Below are positions 39,953-61,072 of a stretch of DNA of 64,000 nucleotides, piece after piece. Position 1 is the first letter of the stretch. The number at the start of each line of letters is the position of its first letter. The DNA lies in the NCBI GenBank assembly GCA_976226885.1, contig OZ320319.1, positions 3,720,001 through 3,784,000 of the forward strand, given 5' to 3'. Made by a program: the position numbers and the translations under genes. A model generated the notes under the pieces. It had not been told where the DNA came from. It was given only the letters and a program-made list of their open reading frames with translations, and did no database searches. Source of the DNA: Iphione sp. A-MEVVRFRX5 (taxonomy: Eukaryota).

Positions 39953-41023
39953 ATGGAAAGCAACCACCTCAATTCGAGCGGTAGGCCTACACTTGATGAA
40001 GACAATTCCGTTCCGAAGAACGCCAGTGTCTTGTTTAGGGCAGCAAACAATGCCACCTCATCATCGACATCACTCGTCGTGCTGACGGAGACGCAGCAGG
40101 AAGTGCTGTTTATCGTCTGCATTATCGTGACGTATAGCATGTCGATGGTGATGCTTATCTTCGTTCTCACCAGGCGGCACTCGCAGCAGAAGCAGCGGAA
40201 CCACGCTCAAGTCTCGGGATTTCTCGCCGGCCTCGACGAGGCCCGACGGGACGCTGCGCGCGAGCAGGTGTTCAGGACCATTCTGCGCATGCCTGGAAAC
40301 TTCATCGGCAGCAGCATCCGGCCGACTGAGCGGGACCAGTACAACAGAGGGGTACGACGCCTGTCTTCCCTGGTACCCCCTCCCACCCCGACGCCGACGG
40401 TCAATTCCATGGCGTTTACTGACGTCACGTCTCTATCCCCTAGGATGACGTCATGGCATAGGTGTAGCTGCCCCCACGTGACGTACGCCGAGTCTTTCTC
40501 CGGGGAAGAAGCTGAAAGTAACGTTTTCATTAACGGCCCCCAGATGTCACTCCATGTCCTCCATCTCCAGCGGAGAGGAAGCGGAATGAGCAACACCTCC
40601 GCCACCTCGCGGACGGAAGAAATGACCGACGAATCTGACCTTCTGCTTCCAACGTCACTGCCTCTGAGTTTGACCCCTGCAGGAGGCGAGTTTCATCGCC
40701 GAGCAGGGAGGAGAAGTCCCACAAACTGTCTCACTGTGGGAAAATATCCCACCCGGCAGGGCCCAGCGTCCAGCCTCGGTCTCGGGGTGGTTGATAATAC
40801 ATTAAGGGGAGCAACTGGGGACTGTACAAACGACGAAACGAGCGCTGGGGAAGATAGACCGGTACCCAGCCCCTTGATTCATACAAAGGACGACTTTAAA
40901 GACAGGGCACCAGTCTGTGGTGAGGGTCCAGTGAGGATGACTGTTCCGGAGATTAGAATCGTTCTCTGCGATGATGAGGACCAGGAGAATTCTCCCGTGA
41001 CTACAGAGGAAAGCACCTGTTAG
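39953..41023 (+). CDS. uncharacterised 356-aa single-pass membrane protein, no signal peptide, long disordered cytoplasmic tail; KCNE/MRAP-like topology
   Basis: Long GC-rich ORF with aacATGg context; N-glycosylation sequons NSS, NAS, NAT precede one hydrophobic helix EVLFIVCIIVTYSMSMVMLIFVL followed by basic TRRH; acceptor ttacag at 39917. Confidence 0.85.
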   Translation: MESNHLNSSGRPTLDEDNSVPKNASVLFRAANNATSSSTSLVVLTETQQEVLFIVCIIVTYSMSMVMLIFVLTRRHSQQKQRNHAQVSGFLAGLDEARRDAAREQVFRTILRMPGNFIGSSIRPTERDQYNRGVRRLSSLVPPPTPTPTVNSMAFTDVTSLSPRMTSWHRCSCPHVTYAESFSGEEAESNVFINGPQMSLHVLHLQRRGSGMSNTSATSRTEEMTDESDLLLPTSLPLSLTPAGGEFHRRAGRRSPTNCLTVGKYPTRQGPASSLGLGVVDNTLRGATGDCTNDETSAGEDRPVPSPLIHTKDDFKDRAPVCGEGPVRMTVPEIRIVLCDDEDQENSPVTTEESTC

Positions 41024-55060: not shown

Positions 55061-55878
55061 CTTATTTCTGTCTATATTAGAGAATTCCTTGCAAACTAAT
55101 TTAAATAACTGCTACTAGATGGCAGCAGGTGCATGACTACTCTTACATAAAGATTAAACACAAAATTTATTCTACCAATATATATATGTATAGAGATATA
55201 TACAAAACCTTTATATGCACCCTTACACAAAACGTCACAGGACTGGCAAAAAGAAAATCATAATTTATTCAAACATAGCAATTTTTCATGGTGTCAAATA
55301 ACTTTTAGCATAAATTATCTTGTCATTTTCTCCCCCAAGAATAGGTCGGGAATGCTTTAATGTGCTGTTCTCCACGATGCATGTATATATTTTCCTCTTT
55401 TAGGAGGCCCTCCACCTTCAACTCCTTCCGCACCTTCCAAGTGAGTATTTCTTTTGATATACACCTCAGTTTAACTTCATGTTGTGTACATGTATGACAC
55501 AGCATCAAATTACATTTTACAAGTAAAGATGATGAGAATTCGTGCATATTGAATTGAAACTCGTTTATTCGCATCTCTGGTTACATAGCATAACAGGAGG
55601 TCTTCCAGTGAAATGTTATTGGCGAATATTGATGTATCAGTGAATCGAGTGTTGGAATACAGGTAGTGTTGATTTCAACAATGTTATATATACAAGTTAA
55701 GCACAACAATGATAAATCACAGTATGGTGTTGATGGTTTGATACAGGTAATGATACATATACAGAAAATAGACAATGATCACAAGTAATATGGTTCAGGA
55801 CTGGTTCCTTTACAATTTGCGAAAAGTGTTTTGTCAAATGCAGTCTGTTGCAATTCAACGAGAAGATTCAGGCTTGAT

Positions 55879-58678
55879 TCATGACTCAAGCAGATTTTGA
55901 CTTTTGATTCTCTTCTTGAACTTCAGGTAGCTGCTTTCAGCTCTGAGCTCTGGTGTAAGTGTATTCCACCTCTGCACATTTTGATACCAACTGCTCCTCT
56001 TGAACCTTGCAAGGGCTGGTTTATACAGAGGCAGGGCTGGTCCCACACTCCTCCTTGTCTGTCTTTTTGATATTTTTAGATGACATAACTTTAGATTCAC
56101 TATCCTGTGAACTTGCAGCATACCCTGTATCTTCCCCCTGTCTTCCAGACTTCGTAGTCCCAGTTGCCGTCTCAGTTGTTTTGCAGATTTTATACCTTTC
56201 CTTGTTCCTAGAATAATTCTTTTCATTAAGTTGTTATACTCAATTTGTAGGTTAGTTCATAGCTTATTCCCCGCAGATACTATATGACTTAGGCCATATT
56301 CAAAGATTGGATCTATGAAGGCCTTAAAAACTCTAACCCTGTCTTTAAACTGCAGAAATTTTGAGAATCTTGAAATGCCTAAAGCACGCTGTCTGGCTGT
56401 TGTTCTTATGTGTTTGGCTTGATTTATCCATGTCAGTTCTGAGTCCAGTCTGTAGCCGAGAAATGTTGAGTCACCGTTGTAATGGAAGTCCATGTAGTCT
56501 GAGGTCTAGGTCAAGAGTCGGGCCATGCCCAAAGACCATGTAGTTGCTTTTAGTTGGATTGATTACCAACCCGACTCTTTTGCACCATTGTACCACATCA
56601 TTCAGTCCTCTTTGCAGTTTCAGGCGGAGACTCATAAGATTTGTTCCCGTGGCATAGAGGGTTATGTCATCAGCGTACAACAATACTTTCCTTATCGCTA
56701 GACTATCCGGTAGAGAATTCATGACAATTGAAAACAGAAGGGGGCCTAAGTGGCTTCCCTGAGGTACCCCTTGCCCAACAGGACAGATTGATGACTCTTT
56801 GCCATTACATTTTACGAATTGGCGCCTATCTTGTAAATAGGAGACTAACCAACTGACAGTACGCATCGACAGGTTAAATCGACCCAAACAACTGATAAGG
56901 TAATTATGATTTATAATGTCGAAAGCCGACGTCAAGTCTAGGAAAATCGTCCCGAAATGAGTTCTTCTATTAAGTGAGTCGTAACATTCCTTCATGAGGT
57001 ATGTCATTGCAGTCGAGGTTCCCCTATTGGGCCTAAACCCATGTTGTTCAGGTGCAAGTTTGAGCGATTTCTCTAGATATTCTGACAGTTTTTGCTGCAC
57101 ATGACACTCCACAATCTTACCCATCCCGTGAATGATGGAGACGGGTCGGTAATTCTCCTTTTTGGTGGATGGCTTTTTCTTAAGGATTGGTCTGACTCTT
57201 GCAGTTTTCCAAGACATTAGAAAGTTGGCGCTTGTGAGTGAAATGTTGACTATGCTCAACACTAGTATCAAATTTAACATCAGGAAATCTTTTAGAACTC
57301 TCATTGGAACACCCTCAATACCACTAGACTTTTTCTCATCAAGACACCGTACAGCCTTTCTCAACTCTGTTTCCTTCATAGATGGAACAGTCCACCCTGC
57401 CTGATTTGACTCAGCTTTTTCTTTTTCAATTTGTGAACTTGCGCCCGTTGCAAGAGCCTTTGCCTTTTGACTGAACCACTCATTAAAGACCTCTGGTACC
57501 TGTTCCATGGGGACTGATACATCGTTGTCAATCAAGGAAATTTCCTTTTCAACTTGGTTAAGTTTTAAGACGTCGGTATTGATAACATCCCAATAGTCCC
57601 TGGCATTGGTGCAATCATTTAGTTTTTCCTTATAATAATTCTTCTTAGCTTCCTTTACAAGCTTTGTTACCATTTTCCTATAAAATTTTCCTATTCTGTA
57701 CGAGTCTATGTCACCCCGCTTGCGATAATCTCTCAGAAAAAAGTCCCTATTCTTAATGGCCTCAATAATCCTGGGGGTCACCCATTCGTGTTGTTTTCTG
57801 CTTTTGTACCTTCGCCATGGGCATAACTCATTGGCCCCTTCCCTCATTGCATTTTCTAGTCCTACCCAAACTTCTTCCAGATTGTCACTATTAGGAATTG
57901 GGAGGTTATCAACCTTGGTCTGTATGTGATCATGAAGTGCAGATCTACTGTAACTTGTATATGTCCTTCCTTCAAACTCTACCGTGACATACCTTTCCCT
58001 CTCCTTTTTATTTCTCAAGAACACAGGGTAATGGTCACTGGCTGCAGTGGCCAGAGAACCCGCTGCGGTAATATGTGTCATATTGCTAAACATCAGATCC
58101 AAACATGATTTGGCCGAATTGTGGATCAGAGTTTGTCCCTTTATGTACTGACACATGCCCCGCAATTTCATCATTTGTTCTAATGCTATCTTATTAGCAC
58201 TGTCTGTGAGCCAGTTTATGTTGAGATCACCACAAATTATGACATCTTTCCCTGGTTTTATTGAATTTAGGCAAGTTAATAAGTAGTCACTGACAATTTT
58301 AAAATTTATGGGTGGAATAACATAACAACAGCAAAGTAGCAGCGGCTTTCTGTGATTGGACCTTATTTCTAACCAGATAGACTCTATATGTTCATTCATA
58401 ATGTCCAGTTCATTTTGCTCCGTTACCTGACAACTGTCACTTATATATACACAAACACCGCCCCCCTTGCTCTTCACTGTCGATTGACGATCACGTCTGT
58501 ACAGCGTATATGCAGGGACCTGTATTTGACTGTCCACAGTAGATGGCGTCAGCCATGTTTCCACCAGCCCAACTGCAGTAGGCTTGCGTTGTCTAGCCAT
58601 GGCTTCGACCTCATGCAATTTTGGTATTAGGCTGCGGATGTTCCAGGAAATAAATTCGCGTCCTTTTCCAGCTGCCAT
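55879..58678 (-). pseudogene. LINE ORF2p (APE endonuclease + reverse transcriptase), frameshift near 56470 and stop at 56257
   Basis: APE motifs SWNIRSL, ETWL, GDLN, SCLD, SDH; RT motifs QHGFR, FLDLTSAFD, GVPQGS.LGP, YADD; C-terminus continues in ORFs 56257-56493 and 55879-56226 (WNTLT..R...FK). Confidence 0.93.
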
Positions 58679-58766
58679 TTTCCATATGTGCCAGGACCTA
58701 TGACCGCAGAGTCAATAATGTATATGGATTAATGACAGCTCAGTCGAGCTTCCTGATGGTGCTGAC

Positions 58767-59384
58767 CTAGAGTAGCCGTACAATGTAATTGCCTACATTG
58801 CACGCCCAGTTGTAGACCACGTGATGATTCGCCATACCTGTTGCACTCACCTCCTCCGGCCGAAAGATCACTGTACCACCTGTGCATTCATGTATGGGCC
58901 ATGAAGTCTCAGGAGTAGAGAGTCCGGCAGTGAGGTTTGTCTCCTCCACCGCCAGGTTGAAATGGCATATTTGGGCGTTCAATAGAGACTGCTCATCACT
59001 ATTCTCGCCATCCAGCGATACTCCATGAATTGGTAGGAAGAGAACAGGTTGGCCCCTGATGTTGGTTAGATAGTGTGCGATGGTGGCCAGATGATTTATA
59101 ATGTCACTGTCCACATCTTCATCGCTAACATCTCTCAATACCCACTGTCCTCTGTCACGTTCTACAAAAGTATGCAGCCCCACTCTGAATACTGTGAGGG
59201 CGAACGGCCCTATAGGTAACGACGATATGTTGCGAGCCACATCCTCCAAGCGTATTTCCGAATATACGTGTGTTGACAAGAAGAAGGTATCAAAGTGTTG
59301 TTCTTGGATGTGGTAGCTGAGCTCCACTCCTGTCCCGTCGGTTATATATCGCACTAAAGGATTCATACCTGGAACACATACCAA
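58767..59384 (-). CDS. middle ORF of the LINE, SGNH/GDSL-esterase-like fold, N-terminus apparently disrupted
   Basis: 205-aa open frame (first ATG at 59366) with VCVPG, VFRVGLHTF, LN..I..FN and terminal WA..V segments; upstream fragment MATRNYQELGRLHILTN* (ATG at 59509) is out of frame. Confidence 0.55.
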   Translation of the reverse strand: MVCVPGMNPLVRYITDGTGVELSYHIQEQHFDTFFLSTHVYSEIRLEDVARNISSLPIGPFALTVFRVGLHTFVERDRGQWVLRDVSDEDVDSDIINHLATIAHYLTNIRGQPVLFLPIHGVSLDGENSDEQSLLNAQICHFNLAVEETNLTAGLSTPETSWPIHECTGGTVIFRPEEVSATGMANHHVVYNWACNVGNYIVRLL

Positions 59385-59554
59385 GCGAATACAGTTTTAA
59401 CCTGAAGTAAGTTGTAGGTATGCACTATAATAGAGAGTTCAATATTTTTACTGGTTCAATTTGTCAATATATGTAATCGCCCAAGTTCTTGGTAATTTCT
59501 AGTAGCCATTGATTTTCATTTGTAGTCCACTTATGGCGTGTTTGTGTTCCCCAG

Positions 59555-61072
59555 TTATTTGTTAATATACATATCATGCCGTATTTGCATAAGTGCTTTT
59601 CCCACCAGGTTGTGCCCCTTATGCTCTTTCCCTACAGTGCACGAATGCCATAGATTAAGACCCGATCCTAGCTCACAGTCATACGTTGCCTCTGTTAGGT
59701 ACAGGTCCTCGGATCGTTTCAAGTAGTCTAATAGATGTGGATTCTGATCAAACTTACTTCTGTATATGTCAATGAGAGTCTCCAAGCCTTTTTTTCCCCA
59801 CTCTTCCGTAGCACGTACGCGAGAGCCGATTGACCTTACTGTTACAGGGTCAATCTCGCCTAGTATCTTCTCTGCTGCCGCCTGGTTGTCAGCTTGTACT
59901 GCTTTCGTGTGTTGGAAGGCTTGTTCCGCTGATGTATAAGTAATATCGTTGTATACTATCGGGCAACAGTATAGGTTTGAAACCGGCACGTGTACCCCTC
60001 TGAATGCTAGCGTGTGGTCAGAGTGGTAGGAGTTAGCTTCTGCTGGTGACAGGGCCGGCGGTAGCTCGTCCAGTTTGTCGTGGGTATATCCAATGCCGTC
60101 TATTGTTAGACTAATCCCTGTGACACTTGCTCTGTGCCCTAGCTCGCGTGCATGTCGAGCGATTGCGTGTAAGTCACGGTTCAGTGGTTGGAGGTCTTTT
60201 GGTATATCTTCATTGAGGTATACGTTCCTGTAGCTGGTATGTTTTCGCAATTTAAATCTGCCACGATAAGCGATGTCTCTCGCCCACTTTTTCTTGAAAG
60301 TAACTATGATGTTTCTTTGCTTGTTCCCCTTGAACATACCCAGTCGTTTCGCTTCCAAGATTTCCTCGTGATCTAGTACCTCGTCAATAACGGTTAAGAC
60401 TTCGAGAACTTTTTCTACAGTGTCCTCATTTTCTCCATCTGCCACACCCTGTATTAATAAATTTCTTCCTCGGTCTGCTAATTGGGTGCTTTCTTCGGCT
60501 CGAAAGTCTTCATCTGTAATCTCCTCCCAGCTACTGATAGATGATTGGACTTTCGTTATCTGTTCATCTAGGTTGTCGATTTTCGAATGTAATCTCCCTG
60601 TCTCGTTTGAGAGAGTATCCACTGCTCTTTTCTCCTGTTCAGATGATCTGTTCTCTATTGATTCTAGCCTTTTTTCGATGTTGTTTAATAGTGCTGTTGT
60701 TTGTGCTAGCCATTCACTCAACTTTTTTGCACAGCTGCACTCTGCCTTCTTTTCTTCCCTATTTTCCTGTTCGCGTGTTGCAGTAGTTGTTTGTTGCGTT
60801 TTTAATAGATGCAGGATCTCCTCGATATTTCTTCCTACCTTAGACGATTCAATTGTCTCCTCATTTGTTGGCTGGGAATCAGTATTGTTATCCCCCGGGT
60901 GGTCGTCCCTACTGTTCCCGGGTGTGGGCGACGATAATAGGTAGTCCCGCGCGTCCCCTTGGTTCTGTGCTGTACTCGACCGAGTGACCGGTGTGTGCGT
61001 GTTCCCTTCTGGTGTACTCTCCGTCTGTTTCACCTTTCCTTTTGTTTTTCTTGGCTTGGTCCGGTTAGTCAT
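59555..61072 (-). CDS. LINE ORF1p (coiled coil + RRM) fused to a C-terminal NADAR/YbiA domain, 505 aa, intact
   Basis: Heptad-like LNNIEKRLESIENR; RRM-type RGRNLLIQGV...RNIIVTF...VYLNEDIP. Residues 355-505 (59558-60010) align by eye to E. coli YbiA: F..SN, TSAEQAFQHTK, KFDQNPHL, LTEATYD, GHNLVGKALMQIR. Confidence 0.9.
   Translation of the reverse strand: MTNRTKPRKTKGKVKQTESTPEGNTHTPVTRSSTAQNQGDARDYLLSSPTPGNSRDDHPGDNNTDSQPTNEETIESSKVGRNIEEILHLLKTQQTTTATREQENREEKKAECSCAKKLSEWLAQTTALLNNIEKRLESIENRSSEQEKRAVDTLSNETGRLHSKIDNLDEQITKVQSSISSWEEITDEDFRAEESTQLADRGRNLLIQGVADGENEDTVEKVLEVLTVIDEVLDHEEILEAKRLGMFKGNKQRNIIVTFKKKWARDIAYRGRFKLRKHTSYRNVYLNEDIPKDLQPLNRDLHAIARHARELGHRASVTGISLTIDGIGYTHDKLDELPPALSPAEANSYHSDHTLAFRGVHVPVSNLYCCPIVYNDITYTSAEQAFQHTKAVQADNQAAAEKILGEIDPVTVRSIGSRVRATEEWGKKGLETLIDIYRSKFDQNPHLLDYLKRSEDLYLTEATYDCELGSGLNLWHSCTVGKEHKGHNLVGKALMQIRHDMYINK

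Follow-up and report, generated by a model that had tools for sequence, protein, structure and literature searches.

The DNA stretch analysed here, hereafter the window, is a 64-kb window of Iphione sp. A-MEVVRFRX5 (OZ320319.1; 272 N), and it harbours on its minus strand a copy of a long interspersed nuclear element (LINE) with three open reading frames (ORFs). ORF1 encodes an L1-type ORF1 protein (ORF1p) that continues into a C-terminal NADAR domain, ORFx is a free-standing middle ORF, and ORF2 encodes an apurinic endonuclease-like domain (APE) and a reverse transcriptase (RT). The coordinates are collected in Table 1. The initial annotation, made from the sequence alone, had reported an intact 505-amino-acid (aa) ORF carrying NADAR hallmarks, and this frame is indeed open. 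It lies on the minus strand, begins with MTNRTK, a conserved ORF1 start common to the relatives, and contains all of the motifs quoted, namely VSNLY, TSAEQAFQHTKA, SKFDQNPHLL, YLTEATYD, DCELGSG and GHNLVGKALMQIR. Its placement as ORF1 of an APE-RT LINE stands as far as the LINE context is concerned, but needs correction in two respects, as a 199-aa ORF separates ORF1 from ORF2 and the ORF2 of this copy is broken. A frameshift near 56470-56495 and a premature stop at 56259-56257 interrupt ORF2, and therefore the copy retains ORF1 and ORFx open and ORF2 broken. At the DNA level the family is single-copy; it has no close paralogue, and the next best match in the same genome is 68-72% identical in nucleotides (nt).

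The assignment of the ORF1 C-terminus to NADAR, which had been made from motifs, is upheld by hidden Markov model search as well as by structure prediction. The Pfam NADAR family (PF08719) matches aa 371-500 with an E-value of 2.8e-20 and 73.6 bits (curated cut-off 35.1), and it also matches all 22 of the diverged relatives from the same genome whose alignment was used to build the AlphaFold2 (AF2) model of ORF1. In this model the NADAR part has a predicted local distance difference test score (pLDDT) of 85-95, and the C-terminal domain adopts the YbiA-like fold, i.e. an alpha-helical core between two small beta sheets. Foldseek ranked the Phytophthora nicotianae NADAR (8BAU, E 1.8e-8) and Escherichia coli YbiA (2B3W, E 2.1e-7) ahead of the L1 ORF1p trimer (2YKP, E 6.7e-6). 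VIA-align superposed model residues 342-505 on 8BAU with Z 18.1 and a root-mean-square deviation (rmsd) of 2.7 A over 161 residues, and gave Z 14.2 for YbiA; the ORF1 family profile matches the 8BAU sequence with E 1e-10. The part preceding NADAR has, by fold, the single RNA recognition motif (RRM) followed by a C-terminal domain (CTD) that is seen in Type II (L1-type) ORF1p. Human L1 ORF1p aligns with the model as 2YKP (Z 10.4, model 146-342) and 2LDY (Z 8.0), both alignments ending at about residue 342, and as 2W7A (Z 10.2) over the RRM. The RRM claimed at the outset is thereby recovered, together with a CTD, by fold, and the coiled coil claimed with it corresponds to helices in the model. 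These N-terminal helices are predicted to form a coiled coil, which may trimerise; the alignment with the stalk of the L1 ORF1p trimer begins at ORF1 residue 141-147, so that only part of the predicted coiled coil is covered. Pfam Transposase_22 gave no match in the 22 members, nor was one obtained via a profile against PDB sequences, and on the model the likeness of ORF1 to L1-type ORF1p is structural only. As a separate observation, the RRM/CTD part of the model matches baculovirus FP25K ('few polyhedra') proteins in BFVD (Foldseek E 4.5e-5) and the protein Atlas gives a Baculo_FP_2nd cluster at 0.78, which hints at a fold common to FP25K and L1-type ORF1p.

Table 1 Features of the three-ORF LINE copy (positions count from the first letter of the window)
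Feature	Position	Strand	Basis and remarks
Three-ORF LINE copy	55548..61072	(-)	ORF layout; 61072 is the ORF1 ATG, the element's own 5' end is not fixed; 3' end near 55548
ORF1, 505 aa + stop, L1-type ORF1p fused to NADAR	59555..61072	(-)	ATG 61072, stop 59557-59555; Pfam, AF2, Foldseek, VIA-align
ORF1 aa 1-75, basic disordered N-terminus	60848..61072	(-)	pLDDT <50; 26% mean pairwise identity among relatives
ORF1 aa 72-179, long helices, predicted coiled coil	60536..60859	(-)	Model helices 72-107 and 114-179
ORF1 aa 200-290, RRM	60203..60475	(-)	2W7A, rmsd 2.9 A, model residues 200-289
ORF1 aa 291-341, L1-type CTD	60050..60202	(-)	2YKP and 2LDY alignments reach residue 341-343; best-conserved block
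ORF1 aa 342-505, NADAR domain	59558..60049	(-)	Pfam, 8BAU alignment, residue mapping, conservation, dN/dS
NADAR key codons	E383 59924-59926; K390 59903-59905; E461 59690-59692; L468 (W133 position) 59669-59671; W475 59648-59650	(-)	
ORFx, 199 aa + stop, free-standing SGNH/GDSL-fold protein	58767..59366	(-)	ATG 59366, stop 58769-58767; AF2 and Foldseek
ORF2 first piece, 735 aa, APE + RT, ends at frameshift	56471..58678	(-)	Pfam Exo_endo_phos, Exo_endo_phos_2, RVT_1; aligned to ORF2 of intact relatives
ORF2 remainder, different frame, with in-frame stop	55879..56493	(-)	Alignment to ORF2 of relatives
Conserved 3'-terminal box, then short microsatellite-like tail, no poly(A)	55548..55618	(-)	Alignment with 3' ends of diverged families

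The fusion is widespread in the Iphione genome (1.18 Gb). A six-frame search with ORF1 gave 4,737 first-look candidates, and the 86 matches that were scored share 30-70% aa identity with the query and are mostly full length without stops. ORF1-NADAR, ORFx and APE follow one another in the same order, with conserved start motifs, at 30 of 30 loci fetched, against the possibility named in the initial annotation that other copies of the family might lack the domain; all three ORFs are open in 7 of 12 full-length relatives fetched, and in these 7 ORF2 measures 929-936 aa. Searching the genome with the Pfam NADAR profile yielded 4,416 candidates, and each of the 150 that were scored exceeds the cut-off; most of these close an open frame of 500-600 aa. 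Six higher-scoring loci that were fetched (L048-L053) belong to other LINE families built on the same three-ORF plan, with an ORF1 of ~550 aa, a middle ORF of ~220-230 aa and an ORF2 of ~940 aa, and their NADAR domains are more canonical (YWGAG) and score 93-109 bits in Pfam, compared with 73.6 for the window copy. Outside this genome, an exhaustive profile search over 1.84 billion public cluster representatives (50%-identity clusters) returned 24,460 matches, 908 of them at E<=1e-30, and about 146 of the best 150 representatives show a single contiguous coiled coil-RRM-CTD-NADAR match. A word-index protein search found 2 matches with the whole ORF1 and 0 with NADAR alone, a limit of the index in view of the 24,460 profile matches. 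In the protein Atlas, NADAR-only clusters of 415-489 aa are present, with annelid records the commonest. Three public fusion proteins were traced to their assemblies, and APE/RT genes lie downstream of all three; in one case a middle ORF of 207 aa is also present. JAAUYH010034287.1 (GCA_013332695.1) encodes a 532-aa ORF1-NADAR with a canonical FWGVG, followed by ~950 nt without a called gene and then by a 1,038-aa RT ORF; the fusion thus exists in another organism too, in a LINE of different build.

The sequences of these relatives also reveal how the domain has been maintained. Residues were mapped by phmmer alignment to 8BAU (chain index = paper numbering + 2) and are given in the numbering of Schuller et al. 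2023; conservation was counted over the 22 diverged ORF1s of the same genome and over 146 public fusions. In the P. nicotianae NADAR, E43, K50 and E125 are the catalytic and ribose-coordinating residues (Schuller et al. 2023). They correspond here to E383, K390 and E461, which are kept in 20, 22 and 22 of the 22 relatives respectively, while W89 corresponds to W425 (22/22) and D130 to D465 (about 90%). At the E383 and E461 positions 143 of the public fusions have Glu in each case, and at the K390 position 101 have Lys and 31 have Arg. A strict Glu-Lys-Glu is found in 20/22 relatives, 5/6 copies of the other families of this genome and 100/145 public fusions, and in more if Arg is counted. The ratio of nonsynonymous to synonymous substitution rates (dN/dS) on the NADAR domain, where neutrality would have counted against the initial annotation, is far below 1, at 0.19 (dS 0.20) and 0.11 (dS 0.42) in the two unsaturated pairs; in saturated pairs the nonsynonymous proportion pN is 0.13-0.28 compared with a synonymous pS of 0.72-0.91. 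Mean pairwise aa identity is 54% for NADAR, 49% for the RRM, 63% for the CTD and 21% for the coiled coil. NADAR is therefore a lasting component, maintained by selection, of a LINE lineage of very large size, and the fusion itself is genuine, ancient, abundant and under selection. The domain is probably catalytically competent.

NADAR domains also occur apart from these LINE fusions. The host genome has a stand-alone canonical NADAR gene at G000:C22:27636416-27636865 (-), with a Pfam score of 176 bits and the motifs CAEQ...HQKA and VEAS...IWGIG. Several public proteins (P0003, P0004, P0005, P0091) contain 3 to 7 or more NADAR domains in tandem and may have arisen in the host from LINE NADARs or result from the merging of gene models; Haliotis rufescens XP_048255699.1, of 4,240 aa, has 7 NADAR matches. 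In P0003 most repeats have Tyr or Leu at the position of W133 of the Phytophthora enzyme.

The remainder of the element provides information on its ancestry. A 3'-terminal box of ~45-70 nt (CACTGGAAGACCTCC...GCGAATAAA) is 85-91% identical between families whose remaining or coding DNA is only ~65-70% identical, and what comes after it in relatives is not poly(A) but a short run of tandem repeats such as (CAATT)n, (GAATTT)n or (CAAT)n. The box is a likely recognition site for the RT; it gave no significant single-sequence RNA fold (z 0.39), Rfam returned nothing relevant and a tandem repeat search found none. A conserved 3' box with short tandem repeats and without poly(A) is typical of CR1/L2 elements. 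The ORF2 of the relatives contains Exo_endo_phos and RVT_1 only, without RNase H or a C-terminal zinc knuckle, and neither the zf-RVT/CCHC region nor the ~1250-aa ORF2 of the Tx1/L1 group is present in it. The best public ORF2 homologues (<=31% identity) are APE-RT proteins of ~960 aa, some of which carry a PHD finger at the N-terminus. Proteins bearing RNase H, and then especially those with zf-RVT (L1-type), match progressively more weakly, the zf-RVT proteins at E 1e-4 to 1e-11 compared with 1e-99 for the best match, and L1 ORF2p in the PDB scores no better than R2. These ORF2 features, the tail at the 3' end and the SGNH-fold ORF discussed below lead us to place the element provisionally as CR1/L2-like (Jockey superfamily) and not as Tx1. 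Type II ORF1 proteins are known in the L1, CR1, L2 and R1 clades (PMC4120745).

The middle ORF has no match in Pfam. Its AF2 model (pLDDT 87) nevertheless shows the SGNH alpha/beta fold, and Foldseek retrieves GDSL esterases with template modelling scores (TM) of 0.6-0.73 and E-values of about 1e-6. SGNH enzymes carry GDS at block I. In ORFx this position reads TDGTG, relatives have E, D, G or N in the place of the Ser, and the His of the C-terminal block (block V, DxxH) is not conserved among ORFx relatives; these substitutions suggest that ORFx is probably catalytically dead in this sublineage. Other families of the same genome read SDGRG at block I, with one family (L053) reading SDSRG. The position of ORFx is conserved in relatives. 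When the ORFx family was compared by hhalign with the 207-aa middle ORF of the public element (ENA), the match was not significant (probability 0.2%), with only motif-level resemblance. Elsewhere in the window, the sole other ORF longer than 180 aa is a 356-aa frame at 39953-41023 (+). This frame, possibly a host exon, is without a Pfam match and shows a single hydrophobic segment as well as tails rich in Ser/Thr/Pro.

With respect to function, we tentatively propose that the NADAR domain acts on base-linked ADP-ribose of the LINE RNA, the cDNA or the target DNA, a reading that we consider plausible but far from secure. NADARs act on ADP-ribosylated guanine (G-ADPr) and cytosine (C-ADPr) in DNA and RNA (PMC11543638, PMC12945103), and removal of C-ADPr is also carried out by some NADARs, including a sponge NADAR, and by YbiA-type enzymes (PMC12945103). 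Since ORF1p is the protein that coats the RNA of the element, an N-glycohydrolase fused to it would be brought onto the LINE ribonucleoprotein (RNP), where the retained Glu-Lys-Glu, which in characterised NADARs positions and cleaves the distal ribose, could strip G-ADPr or C-ADPr from LINE RNA, nascent cDNA or target DNA. Template and product would thereby stay readable during target-primed reverse transcription, and nucleic-acid ADP-ribosylation by the host would possibly be countered. The main carriers of guanine ADP-ribosyltransferases of the CARP-1 type are bivalves and other invertebrates. In invertebrate RNA viruses, NADAR or macrodomains form part of the replicase polyproteins (PMC9503650). 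It is conceivable, although we regard it as rather doubtful, that the LINE NADAR is the retrotransposon counterpart of viral macrodomains and of the anti-DarT NADARs of phages, and that the changes at residues 468 and 475 described below would reflect substrate recognition re-tuned in an arms race.

Several observations weigh against an action on base-linked ADP-ribose. In 8BAU, the pyrophosphate of ADP-ribose lies in contact with W133 and R79, and its adenine is stacked against Y84 (Schuller et al. 2023). As the initial annotation had pointed out for its YWG motif (DCELGSG), the W133 position is occupied by Leu (residue 468), and none of the 22 aligned relatives departs from Leu there; Ser or Asn stands opposite R79, and the Y84 loop is two residues shorter, with the Y84 position falling inside the 2-residue deletion. 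Since Leu468 is invariant across the 22 relatives, it is not a product of decay in this copy. In the public fusions the W133 position is Trp in 125, F in 13, Y in 7 and Leu in 0, and the other LINE families of the same genome have YWGAG or FFGAG there. Leu468 is accompanied by Trp475, seven residues further on, and Cys478, both lineage-specific and invariant, and this Trp475 may compensate for the Trp lost from the W133 position. The sublineage has thus rebuilt part of its pyrophosphate site, with a fixed Leu and a new invariant Trp, and therefore its exact substrate may differ from that of canonical NADARs. Regarding a host writer of the modification, Pfam Enterotoxin_a and ADPrib_exo_Tox had no match in the Iphione genome, a result that is uninformative since control genomes were equally silent. 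Finally, the particular copy in the window may be inert, because its ORF2 is broken and it has no close paralogues.

These points have to be considered together with other possible roles of the domain. The first is that NADAR acts on soluble molecules, either immune signals derived from NAD or ADP-ribose or by-products of RNA-end processing such as ADP-ribose 1''-2'' cyclic phosphate, and would blunt host signalling or clean up RNA ends in the vicinity of the RNP. Conservation of the catalytic core would suit such substrates; moreover, Iyer et al. 2022 argued that many viral NADARs prefer low-molecular-weight derivatives of ADP-ribose and tied NADAR to RNA-repair systems (PMC9503650). However, the same authors favour macromolecular targets for the NADARs of animal RNA viruses (PMC9503650), the partner of the domain here is a nucleic-acid-coating protein, which argues for a polymer-bound substrate, and the changes among the pyrophosphate contacts would harm binding of soluble ADP-ribose equally. 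Overall, we consider a soluble substrate unlikely.

A second possibility is that NADAR is an N-glycosidase for a substrate other than ADP-ribose, i.e. another ribosylated or damaged base or nucleotide, comparable to the riboflavin-pathway intermediates processed by E. coli YbiA. The altered residues (Leu at W133, Ser/Asn at R79 and the shortened Y84 loop) are contacts of the ADP moiety, E383, E461 and D465 on the ribose side have been retained, and YbiA is the second-best structural match. Yet YbiA-type enzymes themselves take off G-ADPr and C-ADPr in vitro and Trp475 may make up for the lost Trp. Furthermore, as most public fusions retain the canonical Trp, the ancestral fusion probably bound ADP-ribose. 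This explanation appears improbable to us, and we give as little weight to a third, that the domain is no longer an enzyme but a module that binds nucleic acid or reads ADP-ribose, or a structural extension of the CTD. Loss of activity would be in keeping with the altered pyrophosphate site in this sublineage, and the multi-NADAR protein P0003 lacks the first catalytic Glu in most repeats. In contrast, Glu383, Lys390 and Glu461 are held across lineages with saturated synonymous sites, and of the 146 public fusions 143, 132 (counting Lys or Arg) and 143 retain the respective catalytic residue, a pattern expected from catalysis rather than from mere folding. The single-copy status of this family might suggest a chimera unique to this locus, the capture of a host exon, or an error of assembly or annotation. 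Such an origin of the fusion has next to no probability and is ruled out by the same architecture at all 30 diverged loci, in other assemblies and in hundreds of public clusters, and the stand-alone NADAR of the host shares only 27% identity with the LINE domain.

The novelty implied by the initial annotation is not supported by a search of the literature. Among full texts on NADAR/DUF1768 with LINE, ORF1 or retrotransposon, only one paper was found, PMC12477816 (Genome Biol 2025), and it already notes NADAR on LINE ORF1 proteins of the oyster: in one paragraph, several Repbase Tx1 LINE families of Crassostrea gigas are described as having YbiA-family NADARs on their ORF1 proteins, with RNA processing suggested as the role. 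The same paper reports NADAR on an Ectocarpus Gypsy lineage. The classification of ORF1 proteins covers coiled coil/RRM/CTD, zinc knuckle, PHD and esterase, and NADAR is not in the list (PMC4120745). What goes beyond PMC12477816 is the CR1/L2-like anatomy with three ORFs, how strongly the domain is selected, how widespread the fusion is (thousands of copies, hundreds of public clusters) and the lineage-fixed Leu468/Trp475.

LINE ORF1 proteins are viewed as RNA chaperones or coats with few accessory domains (zinc knuckle, PHD, esterase). Here, a domain of the ADP-ribose-erasing class is under purifying selection on thousands of copies in hundreds of diverged lineages. If the proposed action on base-linked ADP-ribose is true, ADP-ribosylation of nucleic acids would be a force on retrotransposition in animals, and the family supplies ready proteins and mutants for probing this idea. 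If the substrate differs, the domain would still represent the first catalytic activity of a nucleic-acid-repair type on an ORF1p.

The element can be compared with several known systems. The oyster Tx1 families (PMC12477816) share with it a NADAR on a LINE ORF1 protein in an invertebrate; they were reported without anatomy, selection analysis, copy numbers or a third ORF, and by description the present element is set apart by its ORF2 of ~930 aa with APE and RT only, its microsatellite-like tail, its separate SGNH-fold ORF and its fixed Leu. The P. nicotianae NADAR and E. coli YbiA have the same fold and the equivalents of E43, K50, E125, D130 and W89 are all present here, but identity is 22-26%, W133 is replaced by Leu and R79 by Ser, and the Y84 loop is shorter; moreover, these enzymes stand alone, whereas the NADAR described here forms the C-terminal domain of a protein that coats RNA. 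Human LINE-1 ORF1p (2YKP, 2W7A, 2LDY), or the Type II ORF1 of Khazina and Weichenrieder, has the same order of coiled coil, RRM and CTD, whereas ORF1 here differs in having no Transposase_22 sequence match and in possessing an extra enzyme domain of 164 aa. The esterase-type (Type IV) ORF1 of CR1/L2 elements, e.g. ZfL2-1 (PMC3905857, PMC4120745), likewise places an SGNH-fold module upstream of APE-RT. In the present element, however, this fold forms a separate middle ORF and has neither the GDS Ser nor a conserved His in this sublineage. Finally, invertebrate RNA viruses with NADAR or macrodomains and phages with anti-DarT1 NADARs (PMC9503650, PMC11825919) provide the parallel of a selfish replicator that carries its own ADP-ribose-removing domain beside its replication machinery, and the BFVD fold matches of the ORF1 model include invertebrate RNA-virus polyproteins and ORF1b of yellow head virus. 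In contrast to these viral and phage NADARs, the carrier here is a chromosomal non-LTR (long terminal repeat) retrotransposon, and the domain is located on the RNA-coating protein and not on a polymerase.

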